Source of the DNA: Piromyces finnis finn
Taxonomy: Eukaryota; Fungi; Neocallimastigomycota
Direction: 5' to 3'
Assembly (NCBI GenBank): GCA_002104945.1
Contig: MCFH01000052.1
Span: 62,001 to 126,000, forward strand
Length of the DNA stretch: 64,000 nt
The position numbers and the translations under genes are program-made. This document shows positions 4,501-21,183 of the stretch, piece after piece. The notes under the pieces were generated by a model. That model did not search any database, was not told the DNA's origin, and saw nothing but the letters and a program-made list of their open reading frames with translations. How positions within the stretch are numbered: position 1 is the first letter of the stretch; each line of letters begins with the position of its first letter.

Positions 4501-7500
4501 TTAAAATCAATTTTTATTCTGCTATTCTTGTAGCTGCTATCATATATACTGGTTAACATTGAAATCACTTGCTTTGAAATATTGATTTCATCATCACTCA
4601 GTAATCCATCAATCGATAATTTATACTTTTCAAATCTGTTAATAAATGGTGGATCTTGCTTCCTAATCTCATTTTCATCGACAATAACAATAATTCTGGA
4701 GTCATTATTAATAAAAGTATTTTGTGTATTAATATTTCCGAGTGCAATTCTGGCATATTTATTCTTACCAATTATTCTGAAATTTTGATTGAATAAGTCG
4801 TATAGAGAGGAGTATAAATTAGTCAAGTTAGATAAAACCATAATGTTATCATGAATCATTGTCGATTTAATCTTATTTAACATATTTATACGATAGTAAT
4901 TTTCACTTTCACTAATATCTTCCTTGAAAACACTTCCATAGTAGTATTCATACTTTTTTTCAAGTTCTTTTAAAATAGCTGAAATAAGAAATTGACCAAT
5001 TGAATTGTTTGTAATAACTAATGTGTATCTACTTTCCTTATCATTTATATTTTTAATAATATTTGCCATGGCATCATAAGCTTTCTTCATGTTTAACATT
5101 ATTGGTTTTTCGATAAATCTTATATTGTTATCTGAGTTATGATTATAAATCTTTTTGAATTCTATGATTGATTTATTCAGAGCACCGAAATTTCTTTCAA
5201 TACTTTCACTAATAATATCTTCAATTACTTGAGTGTCATCAGGAAACTCTTTATCGATAAGCTTTCTTGAAATTAATTTAATCAAATGGTAAAAATCTCT
5301 TGTTCCGTGAAATTCTTTTATACTATTTTCAAATTGATGATGCTCATCCTTAATTATAAACCCTTTATGGGAGGATGTGAAATAGAAGGGCTGATTTCTT
5401 AGTTTATTTTTATACTGATAGTAGGTTAAAGCTAATATTTCGTAGTATACTATATATTTATTGACTAAAGTTTCATTATAGGATTGAGCAATAGCAACTG
5501 CAACCTTTTTTAAATCATCATCATCAAGGTCAGGTATGGATAAGTGAATGCCTCGATTCATTTTTGAAGCATCCAATGCCCAATTGGAAATTCCAATAAA
5601 TGCAACTTCAGTCTTATTTCTTTCGTACTCTAACTCAGAATGAATAACTCTAAGCGAATTTTCGGCTAATCCCAGTTCATCAAAATATATGACAGATATT
5701 ACGTTTTTTGATATAGCTTCACTGGATATTGTTTTTCTTGCTCTGTCAAATAACTCTAAAACACTTTCAGAAGTGCTTGTTGTTGATCCCTGATAAGAAT
5801 TAGTATATACTTTTGGAAATAGCTTAAAGAAACCACTTAATGAATCCTCCCCATTCATAGATTTGAATATTAATTGAGCACTAAGTGATTTCGAACAACC
5901 AGGCTTACCTATTATAAAGAGTGGAATTTTTGTGTTGATACAAACGAAAATAGCAAATAAATTTTCTAGTAATGCTTTATTTCTTGCAATTCCATCGTAT
6001 AATTTAACTTCATTAGCTATTAAATTTTGAACTCTTCTTGGGAACTCCTCAAAGTCATAGTTTATACCAAAGGTTTCAACTTCTGCCATTAAAGACAAAA
6101 ATTCATTACGCTTTTGTTTATCATATATTCTGATGAAGTAACAAAGATAAATACTTAAATTTAATGAATAAAGATATACTAATTGACCATTATTGGGTTG
6201 ATGATCTAATCCTAATTTTTGAGATATATATGGTTTCTTTAAAAAATCGATAAACCATTGATATAAAACACTCCATCGGTTTAGTTCTCTTAAACTTACA
6301 GAGGAAATATCAAATTCTTTTTTAATGAAGAAATGGGCTTTAGCGATTGAGTTGGATGCAATTTTTTTAATTTCATTCAAAGGATCTTGTGTTGTATTTA
6401 ATTTTTTAATGGTTTCCGAAGTAATAGTGTTTATATATCGTATAATATCATCATTTTTTGGTGTGGCAAAATTGAAAATAAAGTTTAAAATTGGATGAGG
6501 AATAGGATAAACAATGTAAACCAAGTTATTATTATTATTACTGTTATAAATGTTATATAATCCAACTTCTTTACTCATTTTCTTTTCCTTTTTTCTGTAT
6601 GGATTACACGCAGCAATAATTTTAATATTTTCTTTTAGTTTTCTACCCTTACAAGAATGTTTTAAAATAATTTCTGCAATTAATTCTACAGAGCTACATG
6701 CATTAAATTCATCAATGAAAAGCCATGTATTTGAAGATTTTGTTTTTTCATCATTTGAAGTGTTTTCTTTTTCATTATCGGAAAATAACTTTTCTGATTC
6801 TAAATATTTTATAATTTTATCATCATCTATTCCTGCATGTATGTTAAAAATGTGTAATTGAACCCCTTTTAATTCTGCTATTATTTTAATTAAACTTGTT
6901 TTCCCACATCCAGTTTCCCCCAATAAAATAACAGGAATTTCAGTACGAAGTCTTAGGTTAATTAAAACTAATTTAAAAAAGTTATCTTTTGTAAAGACAT
7001 AGGACTTAACAATGTTTAATAATTCTTCCATTGGTTTATTTATATTTAAAACGCGTTCAATTTTTTTTAAGTAATCTTCTGTTGTTAAATTCTCGAAATT
7101 TACAAAGTCTAATTCATTCTTTTTGATTGAGTTGGAATTATATAAAGTTTTCAATAAATTAAATTCTTTATATCTTGGATCGTTAGATGAATCGATGTTA
7201 AGTTGTTGAGGTACTTCACCCGTTAGAATAATGGTTACCGACATGCCATCTTCATTAAATAAAACCATACTAGGTCTAATATTATCTATTGATATAATAT
7301 TTGGATTACTTAATATTTTCCTTACCTCTTCAATTACAAAATCATAATCCACTGTTCCCATGGAATGGTTAATGGCCAAGTCTTGATTTTTCAAGATATC
7401 ATCGTACGATGAAGTAATGAAATATTTAGTAATTGTAAATATTGATGAAACAATATACCCTCTTACTTCATCAATATATTTCATATTTTTTGATATGTCA

Positions 7501-10500
7501 CTATTTAATTGCTCTACTTTAAAATACTCAGAATTAGATAAAAGTTCAAGTTGACTAGAAACAATTTGAATGTATGAATAGATTTGATAATAATTAAGAT
7601 TTTCAACTTTCATAATATTATCTTCTTTTTTTCTAATAGTATCTATTATAATTTTGAAGCATTCATCAACGTTGTTTATAAGGTTATTTGTATTAGGAGG
7701 ATTAGATTGATAATAAGGGATGTCTATCTTATTAACTTTATCAATATTAAGTATATAGTTTGCTATATTTTTAAGGCGTAATATTTCTTTTTCCTTTTCT
7801 TCTTCTTTTTCTTTAGTCACTATAAATGGTTGTAATTGGTTCTTTTTTATGTTCAGATTTTCAAAGAAATCAAGGATAGGAAATAAGTTCATATAATTAA
7901 TATAACCATTCGGAAGCTCTACTTTAATTCTTATTTCATTTCCATAATAAAATATATTTTCGTTTTGAGAATAATACTTTAATATTAAAAAAGAAAATAA
8001 AAACTCTTTAATGAGGTCAATTTGCTTGGAATAATGTAAATCAAGGTGTAGACCTATAACCCTATCCTTTTTAGTTAATTTTAATAATCTTTTAATAATT
8101 TCACTTTTTTTAATATCCCCACCTATTGGAAAATAGACATACTTATATTTTTCCTTTCCTAGTTCATAATCAAAATCTCTTTTTATTTTAGTAGATTTTC
8201 CTAAACCGGAGAGATCACTTGAATATATTTCAACTTTTGGGAATTTTTTAAATAAAATTTCATTCTTTTTTAAATTATAAATTTTGTTATTTGATAATTT
8301 TCTAATTTCAACGATGACTTCTTCAGCGATATTATTTTTATTATATATAAAAAGGAGACAGGAATTTAATTTTTTTTGATGTTTTATACCTAAAAACCCT
8401 CTTATTAATTCAATCAATAAATTTTTATTTTTTAATTTTAATTTATCGGGTTTCATAATGATAAACAAAGTGTTGGTTTCACACTTTATGCTCCTATACA
8501 CAAAAGATATAATTTCGTTTTCGGAAGTTTCTTCATTACAATTTAAAATTGTTTGTGCTATGGGAAAGTGTCCAGTCAAACATAGGCAACAGTATATAGT
8601 ATCTATTTCTATATTTTCAACTGAACATTCGTGACTGTATATACCAGTATTATTCTCATTTAATAATTTTGCATCTTGATAAATAAATGATATATCTAAA
8701 TTATTTAGAGTTAATAACCCGTTTAAATAGAAAGTTACATCATCAAGCATTTGTTCCTGGGGGGAATTTTGGTTTGAATGTCTAAGGTAAACATTTTCAT
8801 TTTCATCCCTATTATTATTACATGTAACGTATTTTAAAATATTAATTAAAACATTTTTATCGACATTTTTATCCATTTCGTCGATATTGAAGTTATTTCT
8901 AATAAATTCATAAATGAAATAGAATTGTCTACCATGAATTAATCTTGTAACTGAATTTGTTAAATATGTTGATTTAATGAAACGACTGCAAGCTTCTTCG
9001 ATACCATTTAATTCATTAATAATCGCCTTTAGTTCCTTTTCTTTTCTTTTAGTAATACTATTTTGATTAAATTCGAAAGAACATCCATTTTCGATGATAA
9101 TCTTATAGTTTAAAACTTTATAATATCCTTTGGTTGATATTTTATTTAATATATTTACTATATCATGGATATCTGTTACAATTTCTATAAATCGTAATCT
9201 AATATCATCTTGCTCTCCTAACAATGCAATTTCTTGTAGATGTAATATTTCGGAGAATTCCATAGTACTATTGGTTTTATTTTCATTTTCTTTTGTTGAG
9301 GTTTTATTACTTTCTGAATTTTTTATAAAATTAAATGTGCATGTATAGAAAGTACCGTTATAATTTATTTCACATAAACTTAAATTAACTATTCTTTTAA
9401 TAAGATCTATCTTCAATTCATTTGTGTTTAAATGGTAAGTATTAAGGTCGTTAAAGCTATTGTATTTTTCGGATGATTTTTCAAATTTAATAGATAAATC
9501 TTTAAAAGTATTAACTGTATTTATAAATTTATCCAATACTAGTTTTTCGGAGAAATTGGTACATTCTTTTTGTAATTCTTCTTGTAATTTATAAATAAAG
9601 GCGGCACAACCTTCTAAAAAGTAAATATCTTGACTATTTATATTTAAATTATTAATATCATCATTAATAAATTCTCTCATTTGTTTGAAATCGTCGTATT
9701 GTCTATCCAAAATAAAGGATACTAATTCTGGAACATTATACATTTTAATGAGAACATCTTGAATAGTAGAATATTTATTATAATTTAAAATATCTAAATT
9801 TAATTGAAGTAATGAATCATCTATTTCTACTAATTTTTCTAATAATTTTTCTTCAGACGAACATTTACTTAATAATACAATATTTTTACCTAACTCAGTC
9901 CTAATATATTTTTTATCATCATTATCCATACCATTCCTATCATGGCTATTATCATTTTCCACAATAAAATCATTTAATAATAAAATAATTTTATTTAACA
10001 AATCTATATTATATTCTCTATTTTTAAATAATTTTAATTTTCTTGTAATCGTTTCTAGAGCATTAGTATTTACATTCAAAATTCTATTTAAAGTAACTAT
10101 TTCATCTTTTAATTTTGAAGCATCAATATTTATTAATATTTCTTTTAAAAATTCATAATCAATATCTTTCTCATTATTCACAAAAAATATATTTCGTAAA
10201 TTATTAAATTTATCCATTGCATTTTCAATTATTGTACTCTCATTATGCTTGTTCATAACCCTATCCCTTTTAATTTTTTGATAGATTTCAATAAAAAATT
10301 TCGAAGCTTCTAATTTATTTATATTTTGAGCTATATTATAATTCTGATCAAAATCAATGATTTTATCCTTTTGTGGAAATTGATTTATTTGATTTTTTTT
10401 AATATTTTGCAATAATGTGGTATATGTTTTAATGATATTGACTTTATCTTTTGAATAATATTTTTTAAAAATATCAATAATTTTCTTTAATTTTAATATT

Positions 10501-11885
10501 ATATCCATACAGTATTCTATTGTAGTAACCAACATATTATATATGCTATTTGAAAATTCAGAATTTAAAGAAAGAATTGTACATAATAACTTTAAATCGT
10601 TTTCCGAGATATCGATAATAGAATTTGGAATTCCATCATTAATATTAATATTATTTTTATTTTTCTGTGAAGAGTATAAGAAATAAAAAATTTGCAAATG
10701 ATTATAAGAAAAGTCTTCATTTATTATTTTCTTCTTTATTTTTTCGATATTTTTTATTGATCCCTCGATGTATTCGTTGTTATTTCTAGATCTAAAAAAG
10801 TTCATCATTATCAAATAATAAAGTAATTTCAAGTTATTTGAGAATTCAATGTTATAAAAATCATCCTCATTTACTATTCTATTACTTAATTGTTGTAACA
10901 AATAATATTGAGAGTCAACCTTATTGGATAAATTTTTTAAAATACTTATTATATCCTTATTCTCTAATTGTTTTATATTTAAATTACTAATTAATAATTT
11001 AATATTATTTTCATTAAGTCTATTTCCATTATTTGTTAAAATTATTAATGAAACGTAATGCGTATTATTTGAGAAATATTCTTTCATAAAGTCATTAAAT
11101 CTTTCAATTATATTATAATTTTCTTTCTTTAAAGTAAATACATATAATGGACTAATAACTTGAATTATTTCATTATCATGTATATAATTATTTTTTTTGA
11201 TAAAATTTTCTAATTTACTAACAAGTTTTTTAATAATTGTATTATCAATATTGTTACTATTATACATATCAAATAATTTATAGAGTACTTGGAAATGCTC
11301 GTAGGAATATACTCTACTTATAATAATATCTATAGTATTCTCATATATTTTTCTATTTTTGAATAATATTTTAAATATTTCAATCAATATGTTTAATTTA
11401 TCCTTGTAATTTTCTATTTTTTCATTTATATCAATATATTTAATTAATTGATAATTGTTATATTCCTTATTTGATTCATATACTGTATGACTATTACAAT
11501 CTTCCATAATGAATTTTAAAATCTCATTATTTCCTTTTATTTTTTTTGATTTAATCATGCTTCTTCCTGTTTTTTGAAAAGCTTTATAAACTTTGGATGC
11601 TAATTCATTAATTTTTTCATATTTATCTAAATGCTTTTCAAATTGTCTTTTTATTAATCTTAAATTGTAATAGTCATTATTTTTTTGGAATTTTTTAATT
11701 ATTTTCTTGAATGTTTTATACATACACTCTATTTCCTCATCCGATAATCTATCATTTTCCAAGATATTTATACAATCAAATATAAGATTAATATTGTCAT
11801 TTGAGGTATTACAATTTTGCAATACTTTTTCACAAATATTATTAACATCATTTGAAGATGAACGATTATTTTGATTATAATCCAT
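1566..11885 (-). CDS. RNF213-like: RNF213/mysterin-like giant multi-AAA+ ATPase, 3439 aa, intronless; no RING or RZ-finger E3 motif visible
   Basis: Ordered RNF213-family core motifs: SDLSGLGKST (about nt 8190-8220), IPVILLGETGCGKT (Walker A, about 6900-6940), LFIDEFN (Walker B), IIAACNPYR, VSLRELNR, IPLFIIGKPGCSKS (Walker A, about 5885-5930), SYQGS, VIYFDELGLAE (Walker B), FIGISNWALDASKMNRG, GTRDFYHLIK, RNFG. The match to RNF213 is from recalled family motifs. Confidence 0.88.
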   Translation of the reverse strand: MDYNQNNRSSSNDVNNICEKVLQNCNTSNDNINLIFDCINILENDRLSDEEIECMYKTFKKIIKKFQKNNDYYNLRLIKRQFEKHLDKYEKINELASKVYKAFQKTGRSMIKSKKIKGNNEILKFIMEDCNSHTVYESNKEYNNYQLIKYIDINEKIENYKDKLNILIEIFKILFKNRKIYENTIDIIISRVYSYEHFQVLYKLFDMYNSNNIDNTIIKKLVSKLENFIKKNNYIHDNEIIQVISPLYVFTLKKENYNIIERFNDFMKEYFSNNTHYVSLIILTNNGNRLNENNIKLLISNLNIKQLENKDIISILKNLSNKVDSQYYLLQQLSNRIVNEDDFYNIEFSNNLKLLYYLIMMNFFRSRNNNEYIEGSIKNIEKIKKKIINEDFSYNHLQIFYFLYSSQKNKNNININDGIPNSIIDISENDLKLLCTILSLNSEFSNSIYNMLVTTIEYCMDIILKLKKIIDIFKKYYSKDKVNIIKTYTTLLQNIKKNQINQFPQKDKIIDFDQNYNIAQNINKLEASKFFIEIYQKIKRDRVMNKHNESTIIENAMDKFNNLRNIFFVNNEKDIDYEFLKEILINIDASKLKDEIVTLNRILNVNTNALETITRKLKLFKNREYNIDLLNKIILLLNDFIVENDNSHDRNGMDNDDKKYIRTELGKNIVLLSKCSSEEKLLEKLVEIDDSLLQLNLDILNYNKYSTIQDVLIKMYNVPELVSFILDRQYDDFKQMREFINDDINNLNINSQDIYFLEGCAAFIYKLQEELQKECTNFSEKLVLDKFINTVNTFKDLSIKFEKSSEKYNSFNDLNTYHLNTNELKIDLIKRIVNLSLCEINYNGTFYTCTFNFIKNSESNKTSTKENENKTNSTMEFSEILHLQEIALLGEQDDIRLRFIEIVTDIHDIVNILNKISTKGYYKVLNYKIIIENGCSFEFNQNSITKRKEKELKAIINELNGIEEACSRFIKSTYLTNSVTRLIHGRQFYFIYEFIRNNFNIDEMDKNVDKNVLINILKYVTCNNNRDENENVYLRHSNQNSPQEQMLDDVTFYLNGLLTLNNLDISFIYQDAKLLNENNTGIYSHECSVENIEIDTIYCCLCLTGHFPIAQTILNCNEETSENEIISFVYRSIKCETNTLFIIMKPDKLKLKNKNLLIELIRGFLGIKHQKKLNSCLLFIYNKNNIAEEVIVEIRKLSNNKIYNLKKNEILFKKFPKVEIYSSDLSGLGKSTKIKRDFDYELGKEKYKYVYFPIGGDIKKSEIIKRLLKLTKKDRVIGLHLDLHYSKQIDLIKEFLFSFLILKYYSQNENIFYYGNEIRIKVELPNGYINYMNLFPILDFFENLNIKKNQLQPFIVTKEKEEEKEKEILRLKNIANYILNIDKVNKIDIPYYQSNPPNTNNLINNVDECFKIIIDTIRKKEDNIMKVENLNYYQIYSYIQIVSSQLELLSNSEYFKVEQLNSDISKNMKYIDEVRGYIVSSIFTITKYFITSSYDDILKNQDLAINHSMGTVDYDFVIEEVRKILSNPNIISIDNIRPSMVLFNEDGMSVTIILTGEVPQQLNIDSSNDPRYKEFNLLKTLYNSNSIKKNELDFVNFENLTTEDYLKKIERVLNINKPMEELLNIVKSYVFTKDNFFKLVLINLRLRTEIPVILLGETGCGKTSLIKIIAELKGVQLHIFNIHAGIDDDKIIKYLESEKLFSDNEKENTSNDEKTKSSNTWLFIDEFNACSSVELIAEIILKHSCKGRKLKENIKIIAACNPYRKKEKKMSKEVGLYNIYNSNNNNNLVYIVYPIPHPILNFIFNFATPKNDDIIRYINTITSETIKKLNTTQDPLNEIKKIASNSIAKAHFFIKKEFDISSVSLRELNRWSVLYQWFIDFLKKPYISQKLGLDHQPNNGQLVYLYSLNLSIYLCYFIRIYDKQKRNEFLSLMAEVETFGINYDFEEFPRRVQNLIANEVKLYDGIARNKALLENLFAIFVCINTKIPLFIIGKPGCSKSLSAQLIFKSMNGEDSLSGFFKLFPKVYTNSYQGSTTSTSESVLELFDRARKTISSEAISKNVISVIYFDELGLAENSLRVIHSELEYERNKTEVAFIGISNWALDASKMNRGIHLSIPDLDDDDLKKVAVAIAQSYNETLVNKYIVYYEILALTYYQYKNKLRNQPFYFTSSHKGFIIKDEHHQFENSIKEFHGTRDFYHLIKLISRKLIDKEFPDDTQVIEDIISESIERNFGALNKSIIEFKKIYNHNSDNNIRFIEKPIMLNMKKAYDAMANIIKNINDKESRYTLVITNNSIGQFLISAILKELEKKYEYYYGSVFKEDISESENYYRINMLNKIKSTMIHDNIMVLSNLTNLYSSLYDLFNQNFRIIGKNKYARIALGNINTQNTFINNDSRIIVIVDENEIRKQDPPFINRFEKYKLSIDGLLSDDEINISKQVISMLTSIYDSSYKNSRIKIDFKYQLINCNLEEIQGIIFKMNEKILSKYKNMGNSHAAENDDSIDTFLESAVDKSYIDEILETIVPTFSQDILLYMKYSSFSKKYQDEYKMIENLYIKDIKEHQNIKYYLKKINTTKHIIYTYSNIFDQAFEYDNENKNEIKPIENKTFGPFTKVKTIYVNQYKSERTINKIIENYLINDDENLCVFHFSINDIIHLTHLNYLIANNEKKLDHAGKLKPKVILFIVHLKRRIVEDQHPCNKVQNISPEDNDDLQEYNYDNIINNKLISYLTEWNQFFIDNLSRTEVNFVSILYHNNKLFRNDSLFNPDKYFDGNLNAALNTINYNFKMNLISNKIFTYLNTITVEEYKSIVYYYIRDNEEMKAMIKDLAFNILKQFDSDFILRVFTEYEFENNESDFISVIIKYMNIIYKNVIKYIIIHLEKQSIFASKIFGEEKLAHLCFDNIYETYINTSDLSISKFIKESGSEDIDLILGITFPCIITIFDEGFRFMKSNSLLKDYKKNENQFISKRIKSREYHHTKRNIENTLKEKVFKHQYFNEIFENSIYNGTEINNYQKNKLLDLFFNDFIHYYLSKTNKKYFNSSILKFFKVLYSLFAQEQVETGKDDSFDYDKILNFTIFIELYRENIENIIKYILAFDMVLTDYINSYISQLSLNMFIYEDGHNLTLNILNNLYETVIYCIITNPGIKNSDNRNMIMLINDLEVFTMDLKKLEGMINQQQQYIYNSQDLIHVLRYFVKHNIPLVTNINKYLIYLKKENQYFLIPEHENICKNSSVPMNKNLLLYFNILKGRNQNDILVKNEIIQNEFNYFSYKFKNNEDYLDFLIDLINIKLKIENEIYRIELLRILCTEELINEFYSDNSLKNKLITSFETIFSHFNILNYDQNEVLKFLDRINNTYIEDIINQIFTNIIMNKFNNNMIEKYMAIEDIKKNTDSKYASMYCNIYFEKFNNININSFTYDSDDFVSDDSEYYYSAPDTDS

Positions 11886-11996: not shown

Positions 11997-12114
<118 letters not shown>

Positions 12115-12660: not shown

Positions 12661-15600
12661 ATGCATAAAAATCTAGATATTACAAAAAGGATTTTAAAAG
12701 AAAAAATTAAAATAATAGAAAAGAGAGAACTACAAAATAAAAAGAAAAATAGGGCTTTTGGCAATTATGAATTTAATAATTCATATTTATCAAGTAATGC
12801 AGATGATTCCTCCATGTCATTGAAATCATTATATTCTACTAATTCTAATGATACTTTAATAAACGATAATAATGATAATGATATAAATTTAAAAGATGAA
12901 ATAAATAATACAATACTTGAAGATATATCAGAAACATCTGATTCTGATATTTTTTCAGATTCAAATGAATCAAATGTATCTTTTGTTTCAAATAAATCTA
13001 ATATTACCAATAATAAAAATATGGAAAGTAATAGTAATATTAATGTTAACGAATATAATGAATTTAATAGTTATTTAAACAAATCTAATGATGTATTAGA
13101 TGAAGAATCTTTTAAAGTTTTGGATGACTCTGAATCCATTGATACCTCAGATACCTATATTAATGAGGATTATGATAAATTAATTTTATTTAGCGATATA
13201 TTCAATTTCATGGTTTTACAACCAGAATATATAATAAAAATTGAAAAAAATGCCATATTTAATGAAGAAACAAATGAAAAATTGGATAGATTTTCGGTAA
13301 GAGTTCAAAAATTAATTGATAGAGATTATACAGAAATAGAAAATCAATTTATATCACCATTTATGGATGATACAGAATTATCTTGCTTAAGTAATTTAAG
13401 AGAAATAATGGAGGATATAACAGCTGAAATTACAATCCCAAATGATCAAAAGAAATCAACTTTAAATACTAATGAAATTACTTCTTCAAACATTTCTTCT
13501 GAAACAGAAAATGAAGAACATATTAAAAAAATTAAAACTAAAATCTCAAGAGGATTTTGTCTTACAATACCTGGATTTGGATATCTTATTATATCCCATA
13601 ACGGGGATGTGGTGGTAAATAATGAAATAATAATTAATTCTATGAGAATTATATCTCCTTCTCATGTAATAATAAAAAATATTAAATCAGAAATCATTGA
13701 AATTGAAGCTTCATCATTAAGTTTCTTGGATAATCACTCATTTGAAATTAACACTTTGGAATTTAAAGGAAATCAAAATGATCCACTTCTATCTCATATT
13801 CTATGCGGTTTATTTATAAAAGAAAAAACAAATATAGTCATAAATAACCTATTTATTAAGAAGGGACTACTTTTGAATTATGGACACCTTACTATAAAAG
13901 AAAATAATAACTTGGATGAAGGTTATATCTTTAATATTGGAACAATTAATTTTAAAGAAAATACTCATATAATAAAAGATATACATTATATGTACAATGG
14001 AGTCAATGGAAAAATTATTTCTGATAATAATGTTATATTCGGAATTCATAAATTTATTAATTATGGTAATATCAAAATTAAAGAAATAGGTTTTTCATCT
14101 ACAGGTTCATTCTTAAATAAAGGAACTATTGAAACTACAAAATGTTTTGAACTTCGTCTTTTAGGAAAAGGTATTAATAGTGGACTTTTAAATGGATCAT
14201 CTGGTAAAATAATAATTAAAGGAGAAGATTTTAATCATCTTGAAGGAAAAATAATTGTATCAAAAATCCATTTCCAAACTCTGAGAACTCAATTAAATTC
14301 CACAGTTCGTGGACAAGAGATTCATTTACAAGGAGAAGTTATTACTTCAGGAGAAATCCATTTTCAATATGGTATTATAGAAGGCTATTTTGTAAATACA
14401 TCAGAAAAGATAAAGTTTGAAAAAAAATTAGAATTAAGGGGAAAACATTCCGAAATTCATAACCATAATAAAATATTTGCTGATTTAATAGTTAGTACAG
14501 CAGAAACTGGTATAATTAATAGAGGCTTATTAACGGCAAAAAATCTTATTGTAGAACCTAAAAAACATATTCAACTTCAATGTTTAATGCCTCTTTTAAA
14601 AAAAATAAATGTAAATGCATCCTCAAAATTACTTATTGCTTTTGGTTCTTACACCCCAAAATTAAAATCTATTATAAATTTTGGAGATATTACAATTTAT
14701 TCCAACTTATCTAAGCTTTCTCATATAGAAAACAGTGACACTGGAAATATATATTTGGAAAATGAAAAGGCATTTAATAGCATATATCAATTAAGTGATA
14801 TTCATGGACATATAGCAATAAAAGGTTCCTTACCAAAATTAAAATATCTCTATCTAAATAATGGGGCCCTTTTAACTCTATTGGAAAACAGTAATCTACC
14901 TTTGGTAAAAAAAGTTAATTTAGAGGGAAAATCTTGTTTATTAATAAAATCTAATGTAAATTTACCATGTTTGAATTATTTAAAAGTTAATGAAGGATCT
15001 GAATGTGTTTTAGAAAAAGATGTAATAGCAGAAAAAATAAAAAATATATATAACAATGGATATATTAGTTGTTCTATCCCATTACTAAATTTGAGGGCCC
15101 TTATCAATAGAAAAGATAGTAATTTCTTTTTTTTAAATAAAGCTTTCATAAAAGGAAGAATATTCAATAATGATGATTTAGAAAGTATTACAATAAATCC
15201 AAATTTAAAAAATTATCTTAATCATGAAATTGCTATTTTTAATGAAGGAAATATTTATGTTGATATTACATCAAGTCATATTAATATCTCTGGTGATTAT
15301 ATTGGAGCTGAAAACTCTGTTTTCCGATTAGAAAACGGGTTTATTTCTTTTATGAACAAGTTTATTAATAAAGGAATTGTATATTCTCCCGAACTTTTAC
15401 ATTATAATATTGGCTTGACTACAACGATACGAAAGGAAAATGGACAAAGCATCTCAGAATTCTTCAATAAACAAAAGAGTATTCATTATTCTTCATTTAA
15501 TTCAAGTCCAGAATTTAAGGATAACACAATAAATCTAGGTCAGAATGTTGCAGAAAATGGAATTATATTTACTCTAGAATGTAAAAATTCAAAAATTGAT

Positions 15601-18600
15601 AAATCATTTGAACCAATTATTAATGGAAAAAACAAAGAGTTAATTATTATTTCAAAGTATGACTTAAATTTTAATTCAAATATTGAATGGAATACTGATC
15701 TATATATGAAAATACCAGATTATGAGAGTAAATATGAATTAAAATTGAGAAGTCTATTTCTTGATACGGGATCTTTTTCAAATAGTAATAATATTTCAAC
15801 TCAAAATGGTACTTCAATTATTTCCGAGTCTTTTAAAAATGAGCATGGAAGAATTGAATCTTTTGGTGATGTTTCAATTTGTGCTAATAGAAAATTTCAA
15901 AACACTGGAGGTGGTTCTATTCAAAAAAATATACCAGAACATATTCATTATTATACATGCACTACCGAGAAAAAAAAGCTATGCTATGGAAATGGAGGAA
16001 GAGGATTTTTTAAAAGATTATTCCATAGTACTTCGTCTGAAAAATATTATTATAAAGTTAGCACTAAAATTGAAAGTCATAATAAAGTAATATACAGAGA
16101 TATTTATGACATACAATTAGAAAAAGCAGGCGTTATCACTAGTGGAAAAAATTTAACTATCAACTGTAATAATTTTGATAATAGTTTTGGTATTTTAAAT
16201 GCATCAAAAAAATTGAATATACATTCTTTTAATGAATTAAAAAATGAATGTGGTCTTATGTACAGCGGGAATGAAGCATATTTACAAGGAAAATCATTAA
16301 ACAATGGATATAAAAAATATTCAGAAAAATTTGAAGGTATTGATATTAATGAACCTATAAGGGAAAGTCTTCCAGTTCTTTATCAACAATGGGTTCAAAG
16401 TGGACACTGGAAAGGTACAGGTGGATTTTTTGGAAAAGTTTTTGGAGGTAAAAAATGGGTTGATACTTCACATTATGAAAATCGTACGAGAAATGAAAAT
16501 TTAGTTGTAGGTTATAAGCCTTTAGACACTTATTCAACGTCTTCTGAATATCCTGGCTATATATTTTCAAAAGGAGATATAAACATTAATGTTGATAGTG
16601 ATCCTTCATACATAGGAACTATTGTGTCCGGAGAGAATATAAATTTTAAAGGTAATTTACAAAAAATTGCAAATTATAAGGATAGAGGATTAATGATTGC
16701 TAAGGGTGATGTTAATATGGAAATGAACAATGCTCTTCATCAACAGTTTGCTATACAGGCTAATAATATTTTTATTAATTTAACAGAAGATTTGGTTATT
16801 CAAGGAATTGTCAAACCAATGGTAATACAAAATGAAAAAGGTGAAAGTGAAGCCGTTCAAATGGTTAACTTAAAAAAGTTTGCAAATTGGATGGGTTTTC
16901 TTTCTGATAAACATAACTTTTTGAAATACGATCAGGAAATAAATACTTTAACAAATTATGTGTCAATATCAAGAGAAGATTGGGAAGAAGAATATTTAAC
17001 CTATAAAACATCAGATGCGGGATTTATTGGAGGGGCACCTAATATTAAATATTTTATGCCTACTATTCAAGAAAAAATGCTTACTCAATTATTACAGTTT
17101 ATATTGACTCCTATTTATGGTAGAGAAATATTATTAAATGAAAATTTAAAAGATGAATTAACACAAAGAGGAGCAATGATTGTTGATGCTCTTCTCTCCA
17201 ATAAATTATTACCACATTCAAATAAAAAGATAACTAAACATTTAAAAAATAAGCAAGTATTAGAAAATAAACCAGTATTATTATATGGTAAAAGTCATCA
17301 ATCAAGTACTAATATTGAAAAAAATAATATGAAGAAAAATATTCCATTATATGATCCATACCTTATCACTAATACCATCTCCCAAATTGTTAATAAAATT
17401 ATTGCTCAAAAGAAAATGAAAATTAAAACAAAAGGTAATCTCGATTTTAGACCATGTAATTTAAATTTTGAGGCTAAAGAATTGTCAGTTGAATCAGAGA
17501 AAAAAATTAGATTTTTAGGAGAATATAAATACGGTCATAATAATTACACAAGAACTGGAGTTGAAAAAGTCTCTTTAAATTTCAATGGTGATTTTGAAGT
17601 TTCTGGAAAAGAAGGAATTTTATTCAAAGGTACTGAAATTTCCGCAAACAATTTTATAAGAAAAAGTAAAGAAGGCAATATTCAAGAAAAAGCTATGCCA
17701 TTGGATCAAAATGTAAAGTATATTAATTCAAACACTGTATCAGTAACTCAAGATTCGGTAACATCATCATTTACAGCTAAAAATTCTATAAAAACTACTG
17801 CTTTAAAAGGAAATATTATTCAGGAAGGAACTGATATGGAAGCAAATAATATAATATTTGAAGCAAAGAACCATATTTGGTCACCTGTTTATCAAGATCA
17901 ATTACATTATGCATATGAAAAGAAAGGATATGCTAAAACAGAAATTAAGGTTCCTAAAGATGGTGGTATCTATTCAAAAGGAACAATTACATTCAAATCA
18001 AAGGATACATCTTTAAGTGGAATACAAATATTTTCTAAAAAGGTTTCGAATCCAGCAGATGGAAAGTTTTCAATCCATCCATCTTATATTTATCAAAATA
18101 GTGAAAGTCATTATAAAACTAATTCTTTATTTGGCAGTTCTTCAAGAGATGTAATAGAAAAAAAAGAATTAGTAAAACCCTCTGTTGTTATGGTTGATTA
18201 TTTTGAAAGTAAGGGGCAAGGACTTTGTGAATTTGAAAGTGTCGTATTAAAAGCATTAGATGCTTTAATTGAAAAGGATTTCGTTGAAAAAACAGCTTAT
18301 GATAAAATTGATACTTATATTCACGAAAGTTCATCTGGTTTTTTTGCACCAAAAATTAAACATGATCCTATTTTTGATACTTTACAAAATATAAAGAGTG
18401 TGGTAAATTTAGGGAGCTCTGCGACTTTGGGAGATATTGTACCTTCAACATTCACTACTGTGGGTTCAATAGCTAAAGCTATTAATGATATTAAAGTTAT
18501 GTCAAATTTAGATATGTTTAAAGATCCATTTACCCAAATGGCAAAAGTTATTATGAGTAGATATGTATCAAATATAGGATTTGGAAGTCATGAAATGACA

Positions 18601-21183
18601 ATGAAAAGAAGTGAGAAAAAACCTCATCAATCAAAAATTGAAGTTGAAGTTTTAAAAATAAACAATAAAAAAACACAAATGGAAGGAAATTATAACATTA
18701 AAAGAAAAGGTGTCATTGAAACAGAAGATTTTAAAGTAAATTCGCCTCGTCATGTTATAAAACAACAGTTTGAATCTAATGGTTGGTCTATATCATTATC
18801 TACAGTAGCTATAGCTTTAGCAAGTTGTGGTATAGGATCAGCAGTAGCAGCATGTCTTCCATCAATAAATACATATGAATCAAGTGGAAACTATTATTCA
18901 TCAAAACCAATACCAATGACAATGAAGGCCGATGAATTATATATTCGATGTAATAATGCTGTTTTTAAAGGTTCAAAAATTCGTTCTCGTTTATTAGATA
19001 TGATTGTTACAGAAAACCTAACTATTGAATCACTACTCCATGAAATTAAATCGGAATCACATTCATCATCTTTTGGAATTGATATAGGGGCAATCTATAG
19101 TGTATTGAACCCTCCTAAACCATCAAATGGTATTCAATCTCAAGGTGCACCTAATGATAATATTTTCCAAAAGCTTAATGTTATACCATCTTTCCGCTCT
19201 GTTGACGAAAAAGCAATATCAAAAAAGCTTGATGATCTAGCAGAATTAATTGGTGAAGAAAAGTTTTATTTAACTGTAGGTAAAGTATTAAAAAATAAAG
19301 GATCTTTAGTAGGATTACTACCCGATGGATTGGCTGTAAAAAAAACAAATGATCATAATGAAAATGAACATATTGAAGCAGGGGAAATTATAAATGAAAG
19401 TGTAAATGAATATGAAGATCATGAAAGACATGTAGTAAACCCATCCCTTAGTGAATTTTTTTCCATGATGAGTCAAATAGATGAATATAAAAAACTCCAG
19501 AGAGATATAGATATTCATAATATGATTAAAGATATCAATAAAGGATCAAAAGAGGAATTTTTTAAAAGAAAGGATATAAAAAAATTAATTAATGAAAGGA
19601 ATAAATATATCACTATTATGAAGACTCTTAGGGAAAAAGATAAACAAATAAGGGATGAATTTAAAAAAGATGGTAAAAATGAAAAATCATTATATAAAAA
19701 TTTCGAACAAGAAAAACGAATTATTAGAAAGAATGCAATAGATGTTAGAGATCAATTAGAAAAGGAAATTAATAAACTTTTATCAGAAAATGATTTTAAT
19801 GATGAAACAAAGCAATTTTTAATGAGCATATTAATACCATTAAATTCTGAAATTATGTACTCGTCTTTGGATAGTATAGTTAAAAATATATCAATATATG
19901 ATAATAAGAATAAAAAAGAAAATCAAAAATCGACTATCAATGAAAATAATGAAAAAAAATTAAATAATGGAAAATCTGGTGTAAAGGGAAAAAAGCCTAT
20001 GGTAAATGATGATAATAATAATAATGACTTTAACAAAAATAAGAATTTAACAAATTACGCCGAAATAAATAATATAAATATTACTAATGATTACAATGAT
20101 AAATCTAAATTAAATACTGAAAATAATATTAATACAAATTCAGATAATTCAAAAAATGAAACATCTTCAACCTCATTAAACAACACAGACACAAATAGAA
20201 TTCCCACATTTTCTGAAAATTACGAAAATATCAAAAAAAATTTCGATATAATAATCGATAATCCAAAATTAGCAGCTTCAATTGCATACAATGAATTAAA
20301 AGAACTTATTATTGAAACAGTAAATAATGAAAATATCCATGCTTTCTTTAAACATATTGATATGGTACCGGGAGCAGTAAAAGAAATAATTAAAGATGAA
20401 ATAATCTCTACTTGTAAATGTATTAAAATATGTATTACTAATTATGATAAAATTCCAAATGCTATTAAGGATATATATTATGATTATATGAAAGATGGCC
20501 CAATAGAAGGTTCTCTTTGTATATTTATTGATTTAGTATCTTATGGTAAAGAAAGAGGAATAATCTCTAAAAATAGCATATCAAATGTTATTAAATCTAA
20601 ACCAAAAAAAGTCATAAAATCTCAAAATAATATGTCCTTAAAATCTGTAAATGATAACAACTTACTAAATAAAGAGTTCAATATGGCAACAAATGACAAC
20701 AATTCATCTAAATATTACAAAGCATTCAATGATAATGGAAGTAAAGGAAACCTGATATTTTTAGATAATTCAATAAAAAATTCATCTATAAAATCTCAAA
20801 ATAATATGTCCTTAAAATCTGTAAATGATAACAACTTACTAAATAAAGAGTTCAATATGGCAACAAATGACAACAATTCATCTAAATATTACAAAGCATT
20901 CAATGATAATGGAAGTAAAGGAAACCTGATATTTTTAGATAATTCAATAAAAAATTCATCTATAAAATCTCAAAATAATATATCCTTAAATGAGTATCTA
21001 CCATCAGAACCAAGTAGTTTAAGTGATTTAGTATTCCATCCGAAATACTTAAAAGACATTATTAATAAGCCAGAAACATTTTTTAAAATAAAAAGTAAAG
21101 CAGAATGTACAACTTATATCCTCCATGCAATATATAGTAGTGATGAAAATAAAAAGAACAATAAAAATGACAAATACGAATAA
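12661..21183 (+). CDS. Filamentous-haemagglutinin/CdiA(TpsA)-like beta-helical repeat protein, 2840 aa, intronless, no signal peptide
   Basis: Many xxNxGxI/L repeats (LLNYGHL, IFNIGTI, FINYGNI, FLNKGTI, GINSGLL, IINRGLL, FINKGIV, FKNEHGRI, FDNSFGIL, LKNECGLM) resemble FHA-1. A downstream region resembles FHA-2/haemagglutinin repeats (GILFKGTEISAN, GNIIQEGTDMEAN, FKGSKIRS...ENLTIESL...SHSSSFGIDIG, LTVGKVLKNKGSLVG). Low-complexity acidic N-terminus and helical C-terminus. Confidence 0.7.
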   Translation: MHKNLDITKRILKEKIKIIEKRELQNKKKNRAFGNYEFNNSYLSSNADDSSMSLKSLYSTNSNDTLINDNNDNDINLKDEINNTILEDISETSDSDIFSDSNESNVSFVSNKSNITNNKNMESNSNINVNEYNEFNSYLNKSNDVLDEESFKVLDDSESIDTSDTYINEDYDKLILFSDIFNFMVLQPEYIIKIEKNAIFNEETNEKLDRFSVRVQKLIDRDYTEIENQFISPFMDDTELSCLSNLREIMEDITAEITIPNDQKKSTLNTNEITSSNISSETENEEHIKKIKTKISRGFCLTIPGFGYLIISHNGDVVVNNEIIINSMRIISPSHVIIKNIKSEIIEIEASSLSFLDNHSFEINTLEFKGNQNDPLLSHILCGLFIKEKTNIVINNLFIKKGLLLNYGHLTIKENNNLDEGYIFNIGTINFKENTHIIKDIHYMYNGVNGKIISDNNVIFGIHKFINYGNIKIKEIGFSSTGSFLNKGTIETTKCFELRLLGKGINSGLLNGSSGKIIIKGEDFNHLEGKIIVSKIHFQTLRTQLNSTVRGQEIHLQGEVITSGEIHFQYGIIEGYFVNTSEKIKFEKKLELRGKHSEIHNHNKIFADLIVSTAETGIINRGLLTAKNLIVEPKKHIQLQCLMPLLKKINVNASSKLLIAFGSYTPKLKSIINFGDITIYSNLSKLSHIENSDTGNIYLENEKAFNSIYQLSDIHGHIAIKGSLPKLKYLYLNNGALLTLLENSNLPLVKKVNLEGKSCLLIKSNVNLPCLNYLKVNEGSECVLEKDVIAEKIKNIYNNGYISCSIPLLNLRALINRKDSNFFFLNKAFIKGRIFNNDDLESITINPNLKNYLNHEIAIFNEGNIYVDITSSHINISGDYIGAENSVFRLENGFISFMNKFINKGIVYSPELLHYNIGLTTTIRKENGQSISEFFNKQKSIHYSSFNSSPEFKDNTINLGQNVAENGIIFTLECKNSKIDKSFEPIINGKNKELIIISKYDLNFNSNIEWNTDLYMKIPDYESKYELKLRSLFLDTGSFSNSNNISTQNGTSIISESFKNEHGRIESFGDVSICANRKFQNTGGGSIQKNIPEHIHYYTCTTEKKKLCYGNGGRGFFKRLFHSTSSEKYYYKVSTKIESHNKVIYRDIYDIQLEKAGVITSGKNLTINCNNFDNSFGILNASKKLNIHSFNELKNECGLMYSGNEAYLQGKSLNNGYKKYSEKFEGIDINEPIRESLPVLYQQWVQSGHWKGTGGFFGKVFGGKKWVDTSHYENRTRNENLVVGYKPLDTYSTSSEYPGYIFSKGDININVDSDPSYIGTIVSGENINFKGNLQKIANYKDRGLMIAKGDVNMEMNNALHQQFAIQANNIFINLTEDLVIQGIVKPMVIQNEKGESEAVQMVNLKKFANWMGFLSDKHNFLKYDQEINTLTNYVSISREDWEEEYLTYKTSDAGFIGGAPNIKYFMPTIQEKMLTQLLQFILTPIYGREILLNENLKDELTQRGAMIVDALLSNKLLPHSNKKITKHLKNKQVLENKPVLLYGKSHQSSTNIEKNNMKKNIPLYDPYLITNTISQIVNKIIAQKKMKIKTKGNLDFRPCNLNFEAKELSVESEKKIRFLGEYKYGHNNYTRTGVEKVSLNFNGDFEVSGKEGILFKGTEISANNFIRKSKEGNIQEKAMPLDQNVKYINSNTVSVTQDSVTSSFTAKNSIKTTALKGNIIQEGTDMEANNIIFEAKNHIWSPVYQDQLHYAYEKKGYAKTEIKVPKDGGIYSKGTITFKSKDTSLSGIQIFSKKVSNPADGKFSIHPSYIYQNSESHYKTNSLFGSSSRDVIEKKELVKPSVVMVDYFESKGQGLCEFESVVLKALDALIEKDFVEKTAYDKIDTYIHESSSGFFAPKIKHDPIFDTLQNIKSVVNLGSSATLGDIVPSTFTTVGSIAKAINDIKVMSNLDMFKDPFTQMAKVIMSRYVSNIGFGSHEMTMKRSEKKPHQSKIEVEVLKINNKKTQMEGNYNIKRKGVIETEDFKVNSPRHVIKQQFESNGWSISLSTVAIALASCGIGSAVAACLPSINTYESSGNYYSSKPIPMTMKADELYIRCNNAVFKGSKIRSRLLDMIVTENLTIESLLHEIKSESHSSSFGIDIGAIYSVLNPPKPSNGIQSQGAPNDNIFQKLNVIPSFRSVDEKAISKKLDDLAELIGEEKFYLTVGKVLKNKGSLVGLLPDGLAVKKTNDHNENEHIEAGEIINESVNEYEDHERHVVNPSLSEFFSMMSQIDEYKKLQRDIDIHNMIKDINKGSKEEFFKRKDIKKLINERNKYITIMKTLREKDKQIRDEFKKDGKNEKSLYKNFEQEKRIIRKNAIDVRDQLEKEINKLLSENDFNDETKQFLMSILIPLNSEIMYSSLDSIVKNISIYDNKNKKENQKSTINENNEKKLNNGKSGVKGKKPMVNDDNNNNDFNKNKNLTNYAEINNINITNDYNDKSKLNTENNINTNSDNSKNETSSTSLNNTDTNRIPTFSENYENIKKNFDIIIDNPKLAASIAYNELKELIIETVNNENIHAFFKHIDMVPGAVKEIIKDEIISTCKCIKICITNYDKIPNAIKDIYYDYMKDGPIEGSLCIFIDLVSYGKERGIISKNSISNVIKSKPKKVIKSQNNMSLKSVNDNNLLNKEFNMATNDNNSSKYYKAFNDNGSKGNLIFLDNSIKNSSIKSQNNMSLKSVNDNNLLNKEFNMATNDNNSSKYYKAFNDNGSKGNLIFLDNSIKNSSIKSQNNISLNEYLPSEPSSLSDLVFHPKYLKDIINKPETFFKIKSKAECTTYILHAIYSSDENKKNNKNDKYE
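20614..20990 (+). repeat. In-frame 174-bp (58-aa) tandem duplication, about 2.2 copies, near the C-terminus of the FHA-like gene
   Basis: ATAAAATCTCAAAATAATAT... starts at 20614, 20788 and 20962; the two full copies read as identical. Confidence 0.95.

Follow-up and report, generated by a model that had tools for sequence, protein, structure and literature searches.

The window analysed here is the whole of a 64,000-nucleotide stretch of the gut fungus Piromyces finnis (assembly GCA_002104945.1, contig MCFH01000052.1, positions 62,001 to 126,000 of the forward strand). At 12661-21183 it carries a gene whose product is probably a domesticated bacterial polymorphic toxin of the haemagglutinin-repeat type, a fibre that would now be used toward other gut microbes. 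A preliminary description of this DNA had placed one forward-strand open reading frame (ORF) at exactly these coordinates and had read it as a horizontally acquired polymorphic-toxin scaffold. Both proposals are upheld, the former by a frame of 2,840 amino acids (aa) free of internal stops, and the latter by bacterial relatives with toxins and immunity genes and a fungal clade nested among them. The gene and the parts of its product are as follows.

12661..21183, forward strand: whole gene, one intact intronless ORF with an ATG start, 2,840 aa, without internal stop
12661..13215, forward strand: fungus-specific N-terminal extension (aa 1-185), a charged start followed by acidic Ser/Asn-rich low complexity
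13216..15240, forward strand: family-specific N-terminal domain and first beta-helix block (aa 186-860), as modelled; P-E-Y..I..E start and S-R-G-F-C-L motif
15340..16695, forward strand: second beta-helix block (aa 894-1345), as modelled; long hairpins and putative FHA-1-type repeats
17071..17199, forward strand: helical insert between the repeat regions (aa 1471-1513), predicted local distance difference test (pLDDT) score 80-90 in the model; conserved T-P-I-Y-G-R-E-I-L motif
17275..19440, forward strand: FHA-2-type beta-helix (aa 1539-2260), as modelled; interrupted by a helical hairpin at aa 1903-1968
18802..18858, forward strand: hydrophobic stretch (aa 2048-2066), Kyte-Doolittle 19-residue mean 1.98, the sole strong one in the protein
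19420..19497, forward strand: conserved junction motif (aa 2254-2279); family members diverge beyond it, and it takes the place of VENN in CdiA
19447..19947, forward strand: helical coiled-coil stalk (aa 2263-2429), long helices in the second model, pLDDT 60-85
19948..21180, forward strand: lineage-specific tail (aa 2430-2840) with Asn-rich linker, Cys block, tandem repeat and C-terminal end
20614..20990, forward strand: in-frame tandem repeat in the tail, 174 nt (58 aa) x 2.2, 99% identical (Tandem Repeats Finder)

A protein search with the window protein recovers four full-length relatives at E=0. The nearest, P0002, is 69% identical and is present on at least 12 contigs from metagenomes, in each case next to a KIF1-type kinesin gene that is in pieces. 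P0003 is 44% identical, lies on a 10.3-kb contig of 24% GC, has an N-terminal extension of the fungal type and ends in the toxin domain Ntox8 (PF15545, E=4e-18). The closest non-fungal relatives are bacterial and are 30-40% identical over their full length. Among these, P0004 (36% identical over 99% of the query) ends in a contact-dependent inhibition (CDI) toxin of the EC869-like type (PF21111) and adjoins heptose-pathway genes, and P0005 is 30% identical and matches the haemagglutinin-repeat family PF13332 (Fil_haemagg_2) above cut-off. A five-way alignment of the window protein with these four relatives is colinear between aa 185 and ~2285 (window-protein numbering).

A family profile built from aa 1150-2285 and scored against 1.84 billion representative proteins (E<=0.001) matches only 210 proteins, many of them fragments. 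The 64 matches that extend to the profile's end have in common a junction, H-x-R-x-V-[IF]-N-P-[SAC]-x-x-E-[FL] ... Q-[IV]-D-E-[FL], beyond which they diverge; many short matches begin just before this junction and continue into a tail of their own, like orphan toxin cassettes. Toxin families in Pfam were recognised in 17 of the 46 tails scanned. They belong to seven families, all following the same junction: EC869-like (4), colicin DNase (3), WHH (3), LHH (3), Ntox8 (2), Tox-URI2 (1) and DUF4258 (1). Immunity genes lie directly downstream of several bacterial members: CdiI (E=4e-33) in a metagenome-assembled genome (MAG) labelled 'uncultured Alphaproteobacteria', SMI1_KNR4 next to an LHH-tailed member and two Imm39 genes next to another. 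The exchange of C-terminal toxins together with the adjoining immunity genes marks this as a genuine polymorphic toxin-immunity family. Full-text searches of the published literature found nothing linking the family with gut fungi or Trichomonas, and the text retrieved by term from papers on gut-fungus horizontal gene transfer and on polymorphic toxins does not report it.

The family occurs in 15 of the 58 species genomes of the MAG's GTDB order, all 58 being 0.5-2.2 Mb in size, which hints at a reservoir among host-associated, reduced-genome gut bacteria. A second carrier, labelled Bacteroidaceae, has its family gene after parA/parB, and the carrier genome of locus L021 also encodes an ankyrin-repeat protein. 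A single in-frame TAA (L005:7218-7220) interrupts the otherwise open frame of 2,365 codons in the homologue from the 'uncultured Alphaproteobacteria' MAG; a sequencing error, a pseudogene or read-through are each possible, and the codon was read as X in the tree. Downstream of P0005 (L004:7040-11819) stand about 12 small same-strand ORFs of 47-173 aa that could be an array of immunity genes or orphan cassettes; Pfam assigned no family to the two that were scanned (173 and 114 aa).

The preliminary description had likened the protein to CdiA and other two-partner-secretion (TPS) exoproteins. The domain order and the repeat type support that likeness; membership of CdiA/TpsA proper does not stand, with TPS domain, TpsB and VENN all missing. 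The TPS domain PF05860 is matched neither by the window protein (E<=1) nor by its pieces (E<=10), nor by P0003-P0005 (E<=0.1). No gene for the transporter TpsB (ShlB/POTRA) is present among the window ORFs or in the upstream flanks of up to 10 kb at four bacterial loci (L003, L005, L020 and L021). Searches of five whole bacterial genomes for PF03865 and for TPS were likewise blank and are given no weight, their controls having been silent too. The window protein matches no pretoxin family of Pfam, and a different junction motif replaces VENN. Seven classical TpsA proteins, which show the canonical TPS motif, do match the family profile in 8-19 repeated stretches each (E 1e-15 to 1e-9), and these matches are limited to profile positions 4-86, equivalent to aa ~1153-1235. 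Since the TpsA likeness is confined to repeat units, the relation to CdiA and FhaB is one of repeat type and architecture, not orthology. The bacterial members have their own signal-peptide-like leader (consensus M-F-S/T-x-S-L/F-K/R-K ... T-N-I-S-P-A/V-F), followed by a family-specific domain that starts P-E-Y-x-I/V-x-V. NCBIfam has no model for the family, and neither Pfam nor NCBIfam has one for its N-terminal domain or junction. Judged by sequence, the window gene stems from a small family, as yet unnamed, whose leader, N-terminal domain and junction are its own.

The repeat architecture of the window protein is most visible in its N-x-G rungs, at aa 406, 425, 467, 486 and 506 with a period of ~20 residues, which are invariant in the five-sequence alignment; over aa 381-1220 such triplets number 17 against ~7.5 expected. 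They had been described as FHA-1-like repeats. A beta-helix with N-x-G rungs is indeed predicted, and the FHA-1 label is backed only at aa ~1153-1235 by the TpsA profile matches. Scans of the whole protein against Pfam and NCBIfam gave no match. On 500-aa pieces, Pfam returned PF13332 at ~aa 1690-1740 (E=5.7e-4, 20.5 bits, cut-off 22) and PF05594 (Fil_haemagg) at ~aa 1155-1190 (E=0.074, 14.2 bits, cut-off 21.5). At the aligned place PF13332 exceeds its cut-off in P0005 (27.2 bits), P0008 (42 bits, E=1.4e-10) and P0024 (24.4 bits). The hidden Markov model check proposed for the haemagglutinin repeats, a blank result of which was to count against the proposal, therefore gives matches below cut-off in the window protein and above it in relatives. 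The junction residues V2258, N2260, P2261, E2265 and M2270 are invariant across the same five sequences, and the hydrophobic stretch at aa 2048-2066 lies inside the conserved core, where the family consensus reads G-W-S-I-S-L-S...A-C-L-P-S-I.

Two AlphaFold2 models, computed on family alignments for aa 186-1385 (28 sequences) and aa 1386-2500 (71 sequences), provide a structural view of this core. The first has a mean pLDDT of 82.9 and is nearly all beta, with most of the first block at pLDDT 85-97. Its N-terminus forms a small sheet; further elements are a disordered loop (aa ~236-296), a long and regular helix of strands and several long hairpins, the beta-helix occupying aa ~298-860 and ~960-1345. 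The second has a mean pLDDT of 78.2 and enters a beta-helix from aa ~1539 that reaches pLDDT 95-98 over ~1586-1895. The long beta-helices that had been anticipated are accordingly predicted in both models, and with them the rest of the proposed layout: helices between the repeat regions at aa 1471-1513 in the second model, an FHA-2-like beta-helix at aa ~1539-2260, where PF13332 comes near its cut-off, and a helical C-terminus in the form of a coiled coil at aa 2263-2429.

A structural search with VIA-align (48,161 chains) places the two models close to many solved beta-helices (Z 14-25). The best match of aa 397-652 is the secretion domain of HMW1 (2odl; Z 19.8, root-mean-square deviation (rmsd) 2.7 A over 236 residues), followed by EtpA (8cpk, Z 18.8) and HxuA (4rt6, Z 18.4). 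The second block (aa ~1011-1331) matches the helix of the FhaB secretion domain (1rwr) at Z 14.8, and the second model is headed by Vag8 (7akv, Z 25.0), EtpA (8cpk, Z 21.1) and pertactin (2iou, Z 20.4). Foldseek found no match to the first whole model at E<=0.001, a blank result that is usual for long solenoids, and a PDB sequence search with the family profile gave only chance coiled-coil rows. On these models aa 186-2500 is predicted to be a series of long right-handed beta-helices.

The gene is resident in the fungal genome. It lies ~75 kb into a contig of 400,663 bp, in an assembly of 56,455,805 bp in 232 contigs, and stop codons stand immediately 5' of its ATG. Composition in 2-kb steps is very AT-rich throughout the window (GC 15-35%) and falls at 18-27% across the gene, in agreement with the earlier remark that the gene resembles its flanks (likewise 15-35%). 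GC content at third codon positions (GC3) is 0.143 in the gene, 0.20-0.26 in four neighbouring host genes and 0.23-0.35 in bacterial relatives. The ratio of nonsynonymous to synonymous substitution rates (dN/dS), estimated by the Nei-Gojobori method against P0002 at dS ~0.85 and rough in its absolute values given the biased composition, is 0.28 for the whole protein, 0.26 for aa 186-1150 and 0.20 for aa 1151-2285, with 0.47 for the N-terminal extension and 0.22-0.60 for the tail. At the codon level these values show purifying selection on the beta-helical core of ~2,100 residues in the fungus.

In a tree of aa 1150-2285 (23 rows, LG+C20) the three fungal proteins (window, P0002 and P0003) form one clade (100/100) several nodes inside the bacterial sequences, with P0004/P0007/P0009 as its sister (92/90). 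A tree of the N-terminal half (17 rows) places a truncated paralogue from a second contig of the source assembly in the fungal clade as well (100/100, on a long branch), the sister there being P0004/P0070 (97/96).

C183:38086-43289, reverse strand: truncated paralogue, a 1,134-aa ORF limited to the N-terminal half, with 32-36% identity to the window protein

This paralogue adjoins a proline-rich WH2-like gene. An ORF of 362 aa ~0.7 kb upstream is a 99% copy of its last 362 codons, and by that near-identity is an apparent recent segmental duplication. Together the trees would fit one transfer from a bacterium to a fungus followed by duplication.

What the fungal lineage seems to have altered are the two ends. 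The start methionines of the three fungal-type proteins align, and each begins with an extension of 185-250 residues, charged and then acidic and Ser/Asn-rich. The start methionine and an S-D-I-F..D-S motif are common to the three and do not occur in the aligned bacterial proteins. The extension occupies the place of the bacterial leader (~28 aa), of which only the last few positions align, and the window protein has no hydrophobic leader (maximum Kyte-Doolittle 19-residue mean -0.34 in the first 40 windows). With the hydrophobic core of the leader replaced by an acidic extension, classical entry into the endoplasmic reticulum is not predicted. The preliminary description had seen an acidic low-complexity N-terminus, here aa 1-185, and the lack of a signal peptide, TPS domain and adjoining TpsB gene; Kyte-Doolittle, Pfam and neighbour-ORF scans agree with it, all being negative.

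At the other end, the window tail, including a short conserved C-terminal end, is shared only with P0002. It contains a block of ~135 aa with several cysteines (aa 2524-2660). The ESM Atlas, a stand-alone protein search and a search of the fungus's own genome were all blank for aa 2480-2840 and aa 2524-2660, and no other copies of the N-terminal extension or the tail were found elsewhere in the source genome. P0002 has a different Asn-rich repeat of shorter period at the same place in its tail. Tails thus differ among fungal copies: P0003 carries Ntox8, and the window protein and P0002 share another tail without a known toxin.

A second eukaryote, Trichomonas vaginalis, also holds the family, in the form of a long protein and a shorter paralogue.

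L031:10001-16411: P0012, 2,136 aa, on the 34.7-Mb chromosome CM044621.1 of GCA_026262505.1
L033:8001-10478: P0024, the shorter paralogue, 825 aa, on DS113512.1 of GCA_000002825.3

P0012 is neighboured by genes for eIF2-alpha, a subtilase, eIF4E and a small GTPase, and its assembly is given as T. vaginalis G3 NYU_TvagG3_2 in an entry of the reference list of PMC12589397 (its reference 20). In the tree of aa 1150-2285, P0012 and P0024 group together (100/100) apart from the fungal clade, which fits the attribution of P0024 to T. vaginalis. The assembly of P0024 is one that we take to be the original T. vaginalis G3 assembly. Under an approximately unbiased (AU) test, one clade uniting the eukaryotic members is rejected (p=4e-5, for a group named after the tree was seen). 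On this phylogenetic ground Trichomonas is shown to have apparently acquired the family independently of the fungi. P0012 lacks the leader as well: its start coincides exactly with the P-[DE]-[FY] position, and stop codons lie upstream of it.

The remaining large ORFs of the window are of eukaryotic type (ankyrin, PSP1, reverse transcriptase and AAA ATPase); the ankyrin-repeat neighbour has 1,150 aa. Among them is a second giant gene.

1566-11885, reverse strand: giant AAA/dynein-type ATPase gene, 3,439 aa, two Walker-A sites, matches to PF00004, PF12775 and PF07728

It is divergent from the 2,840-aa gene, in a head-to-head arrangement with a gap of 775 bp. A local BLAST search did not find it within 3 kb upstream of P0002, and there is no synteny between the window locus and the P0002 loci. 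As the AAA gene does not stand beside P0002, the head-to-head pair is not counted as a module and the pairing looks incidental. A repeat of at least 100 letters, with very common short words, lies at 11998-12113 in the intergenic region between both giant genes, and a retroelement ORF of 1,519 aa with a reverse-transcriptase domain (PF00078, E=1e-35) at 41953-46512 on the forward strand.

These observations can be combined in a model for how the gene arose and what it may do. In gut bacteria a leader-bearing protein of ~2,000-2,500 residues presents an N-terminal domain, two beta-helix blocks, a junction, a coiled coil and an exchangeable nuclease, which a downstream immunity protein would neutralise. 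By the trees, one such gene entered the anaerobic gut fungus lineage once; it was then duplicated and took on the extreme AT codon usage of its host. The whole beta-helical core has been kept under purifying selection, and the acidic Ser/Asn-rich extension has replaced the hydrophobic core of the leader. The destroyed leader and the tail without a known toxin suggest that the protein has been repurposed, and its payload in the window lineage may be either new or lost. Its role would lie in interactions with other gut microbes, as an adhesive or delivery fibre that could be exposed at the surface or released, by non-classical export or after sporangial lysis. A contact role is favoured by the conservation of the delivery fibre in its entirety and not of an end domain alone. 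A more far-reaching version, which we think less likely than not, is that gut fungi, and Trichomonas independently, possess a eukaryotic polymorphic toxin system in which the fibre would be exported non-classically, cassettes would be exchanged within the fungi (Ntox8 or a new payload) and bacteria or rival fungi would be killed or held.

Several points weigh against the reading of a domesticated, outward-acting toxin fibre. As the protein lacks a signal peptide, a role outside the cell would depend on a route of export that is unproven. In the tail (aa 2286-2840) neither a Pfam family (E<=0.001) nor any toxin is recognised, and the window gene yielded no immunity-gene candidate, the small downstream genes not having been analysed. 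Both haemagglutinin-repeat matches in the window protein itself are under the Pfam cut-offs. An hhalign comparison of the family with five classical TpsA proteins reached a probability of 56% over 29 columns in the FHA-2 region, too weak for homology to classical TpsA beyond the repeats, which was rejected on that account. Phage tailspikes reach Z 16-18, and the TpsA Z-scores are only slightly above such generic beta-helices. The trees are midpoint-rooted, their fungal rows are flagged for deviant composition, and the family is seen in only three fungal-type lineages. The bacterial MAGs bear taxon names given by their depositors, and these conflict with one another (Alphaproteobacteria versus Bacteroidaceae), so that a donor phylum can be named only tentatively.

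The main rival to a fibre acting on other microbes is an intracellular one, in which the protein is never exported and serves in defence against endosymbionts or viruses, in allorecognition or in programmed cell death, the beta-helix being a scaffold and the tail an effector. The three fungal proteins have neither an N-terminal signal peptide nor a transmembrane anchor, the independently acquired Trichomonas homologue is also leaderless, and passages of PMC3482391 describe the recruitment of bacterial toxin domains for fungal incompatibility and defence. The giant RNF213-like AAA ATPase gene, head-to-head at a distance of 775 bp upstream, would suit such a role, but was not found up to 3 kb upstream of the 69%-identical homologue. 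Pfam detects no intracellular signalling domain fused to the protein, and a whole fibre of 2,100 residues kept at dN/dS ~0.2 would be difficult to account for were the tail the only part to act inside the cell; on balance we regard an intracellular role as doubtful. That the protein is instead a true CdiA/TpsA exoprotein secreted by the two-partner route, with a TPS domain too diverged to detect, would explain why aa 397-652 best match the TPS secretion domains of HMW1, EtpA and HxuA (Z 17-20), why FHA-1 and FHA-2 repeat signals are present and why relatives carry CdiI and CDI-type toxins. It is improbable given that PF05860 is missing at E<=0.1 from the window protein and from full-length bacterial relatives alike, as is VENN, that the relatives have a conserved leader and a P-E-Y N-terminal domain of their own, and that four bacterial loci lack ShlB/POTRA in up to 10 kb of upstream flank; the hhalign result is weak, and in the structure search the scores of tailspikes come close.

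Decay and contamination are both unlikely. A neutral relic, an untranslated or functionless ORF heading for decay, would agree with a tail in which no known toxin domain was found and with the truncated and partly duplicated C183 paralogue. We consider it very improbable, as a frame of 8.5 kb cannot stay open by chance in DNA of ~25% GC, more than 2,000 codons show a dN/dS of 0.2-0.26 at dS ~0.85, and three lineages conserve the start codon and the motifs of the N-terminal extension. Contamination with bacterial DNA or a chimeric join in the assembly would account for an intronless gene of bacterial ancestry that was not found in most of the published gut-fungus gene sets searched, yet is hardly credible here. 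The GC3 of 0.143 is host-like and far below that of every bacterial relative, the low-complexity regions of the N-terminus and tail are typical of the host, and the gene sits 75 kb inside a contig of 400 kb, with eukaryotic genes on either side. On a second contig a diverged paralogue neighbours a proline-rich gene of eukaryotic kind, and the 69%-identical homologue stands beside a kinesin gene on at least 12 contigs, in independent metagenomes.

It is well documented that bacterial polymorphic toxins have passed single toxin domains to eukaryotes, and transfer of a complete scaffold is, to our knowledge, essentially limited to the teneurins, which are of the RHS type. The present gene represents a complete scaffold of the haemagglutinin type, with ~2,100 conserved residues kept under selection in a gut fungus and a payload that differs between lineages, and this rare family appears to have been taken up separately by a second anaerobic mucosal eukaryote. 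The question whether a bacterial machine for contact-dependent delivery can be deployed by eukaryotes thereby becomes directly testable. The gene also adds a conflict-related class, distinct from carbohydrate-active enzymes, to the genes that gut fungi have obtained from rumen bacteria, and it defines an unnamed bacterial toxin family that is apparently common in one order of small-genome gut bacteria.

Among known systems the closest parallels are CdiA (E. coli EC93/EC869, Burkholderia BcpA) and Bordetella FhaB, which share with the family a beta-helical fibre, FHA-2 (PF13332) and putative FHA-1 repeats with a helical region between them, and a conserved junction followed by a polymorphic C-terminal toxin. 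The parallel with CdiA extends to the EC869-like CDI-type toxins and CdiI immunity of the window gene's relatives. Unlike CdiA and FhaB, the family has no TPS domain or VENN and, at the loci scanned, no TpsB/CdiB partner, and it has its own leader, N-terminal domain and junction; the window copy differs further in residing in a eukaryote, without leader and without known toxin. In structure, the first beta-helix block is matched best by the TpsA adhesins HMW1 (2odl), EtpA (8cpk, 8vba) and HxuA (4rt6, 4i84), with Z 16-20 and an rmsd of 2.3-3.6 A over 195-288 residues, at a sequence identity of only 13-17%. As tailspikes match nearly as well, this resemblance shows fold, not family. The teneurins (Odd Oz) of animals are membrane-anchored and of the RHS/YD-shell type with a GHH nuclease, whereas the fungal gene is of the haemagglutinin type without an anchor and its sister lineage keeps an apparently intact Ntox8 cassette. 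A biological parallel may be offered by T. vaginalis, whose laterally acquired NlpC/P60 peptidoglycan hydrolases act on neighbouring bacteria, as described in passages of PMC6299479. Those are small enzymes with shown activity, in contrast to a scaffold of 2,000 residues known from sequence; in both cases a mucosal anaerobic eukaryote has kept a bacterial gene, and T. vaginalis itself also holds the present family.

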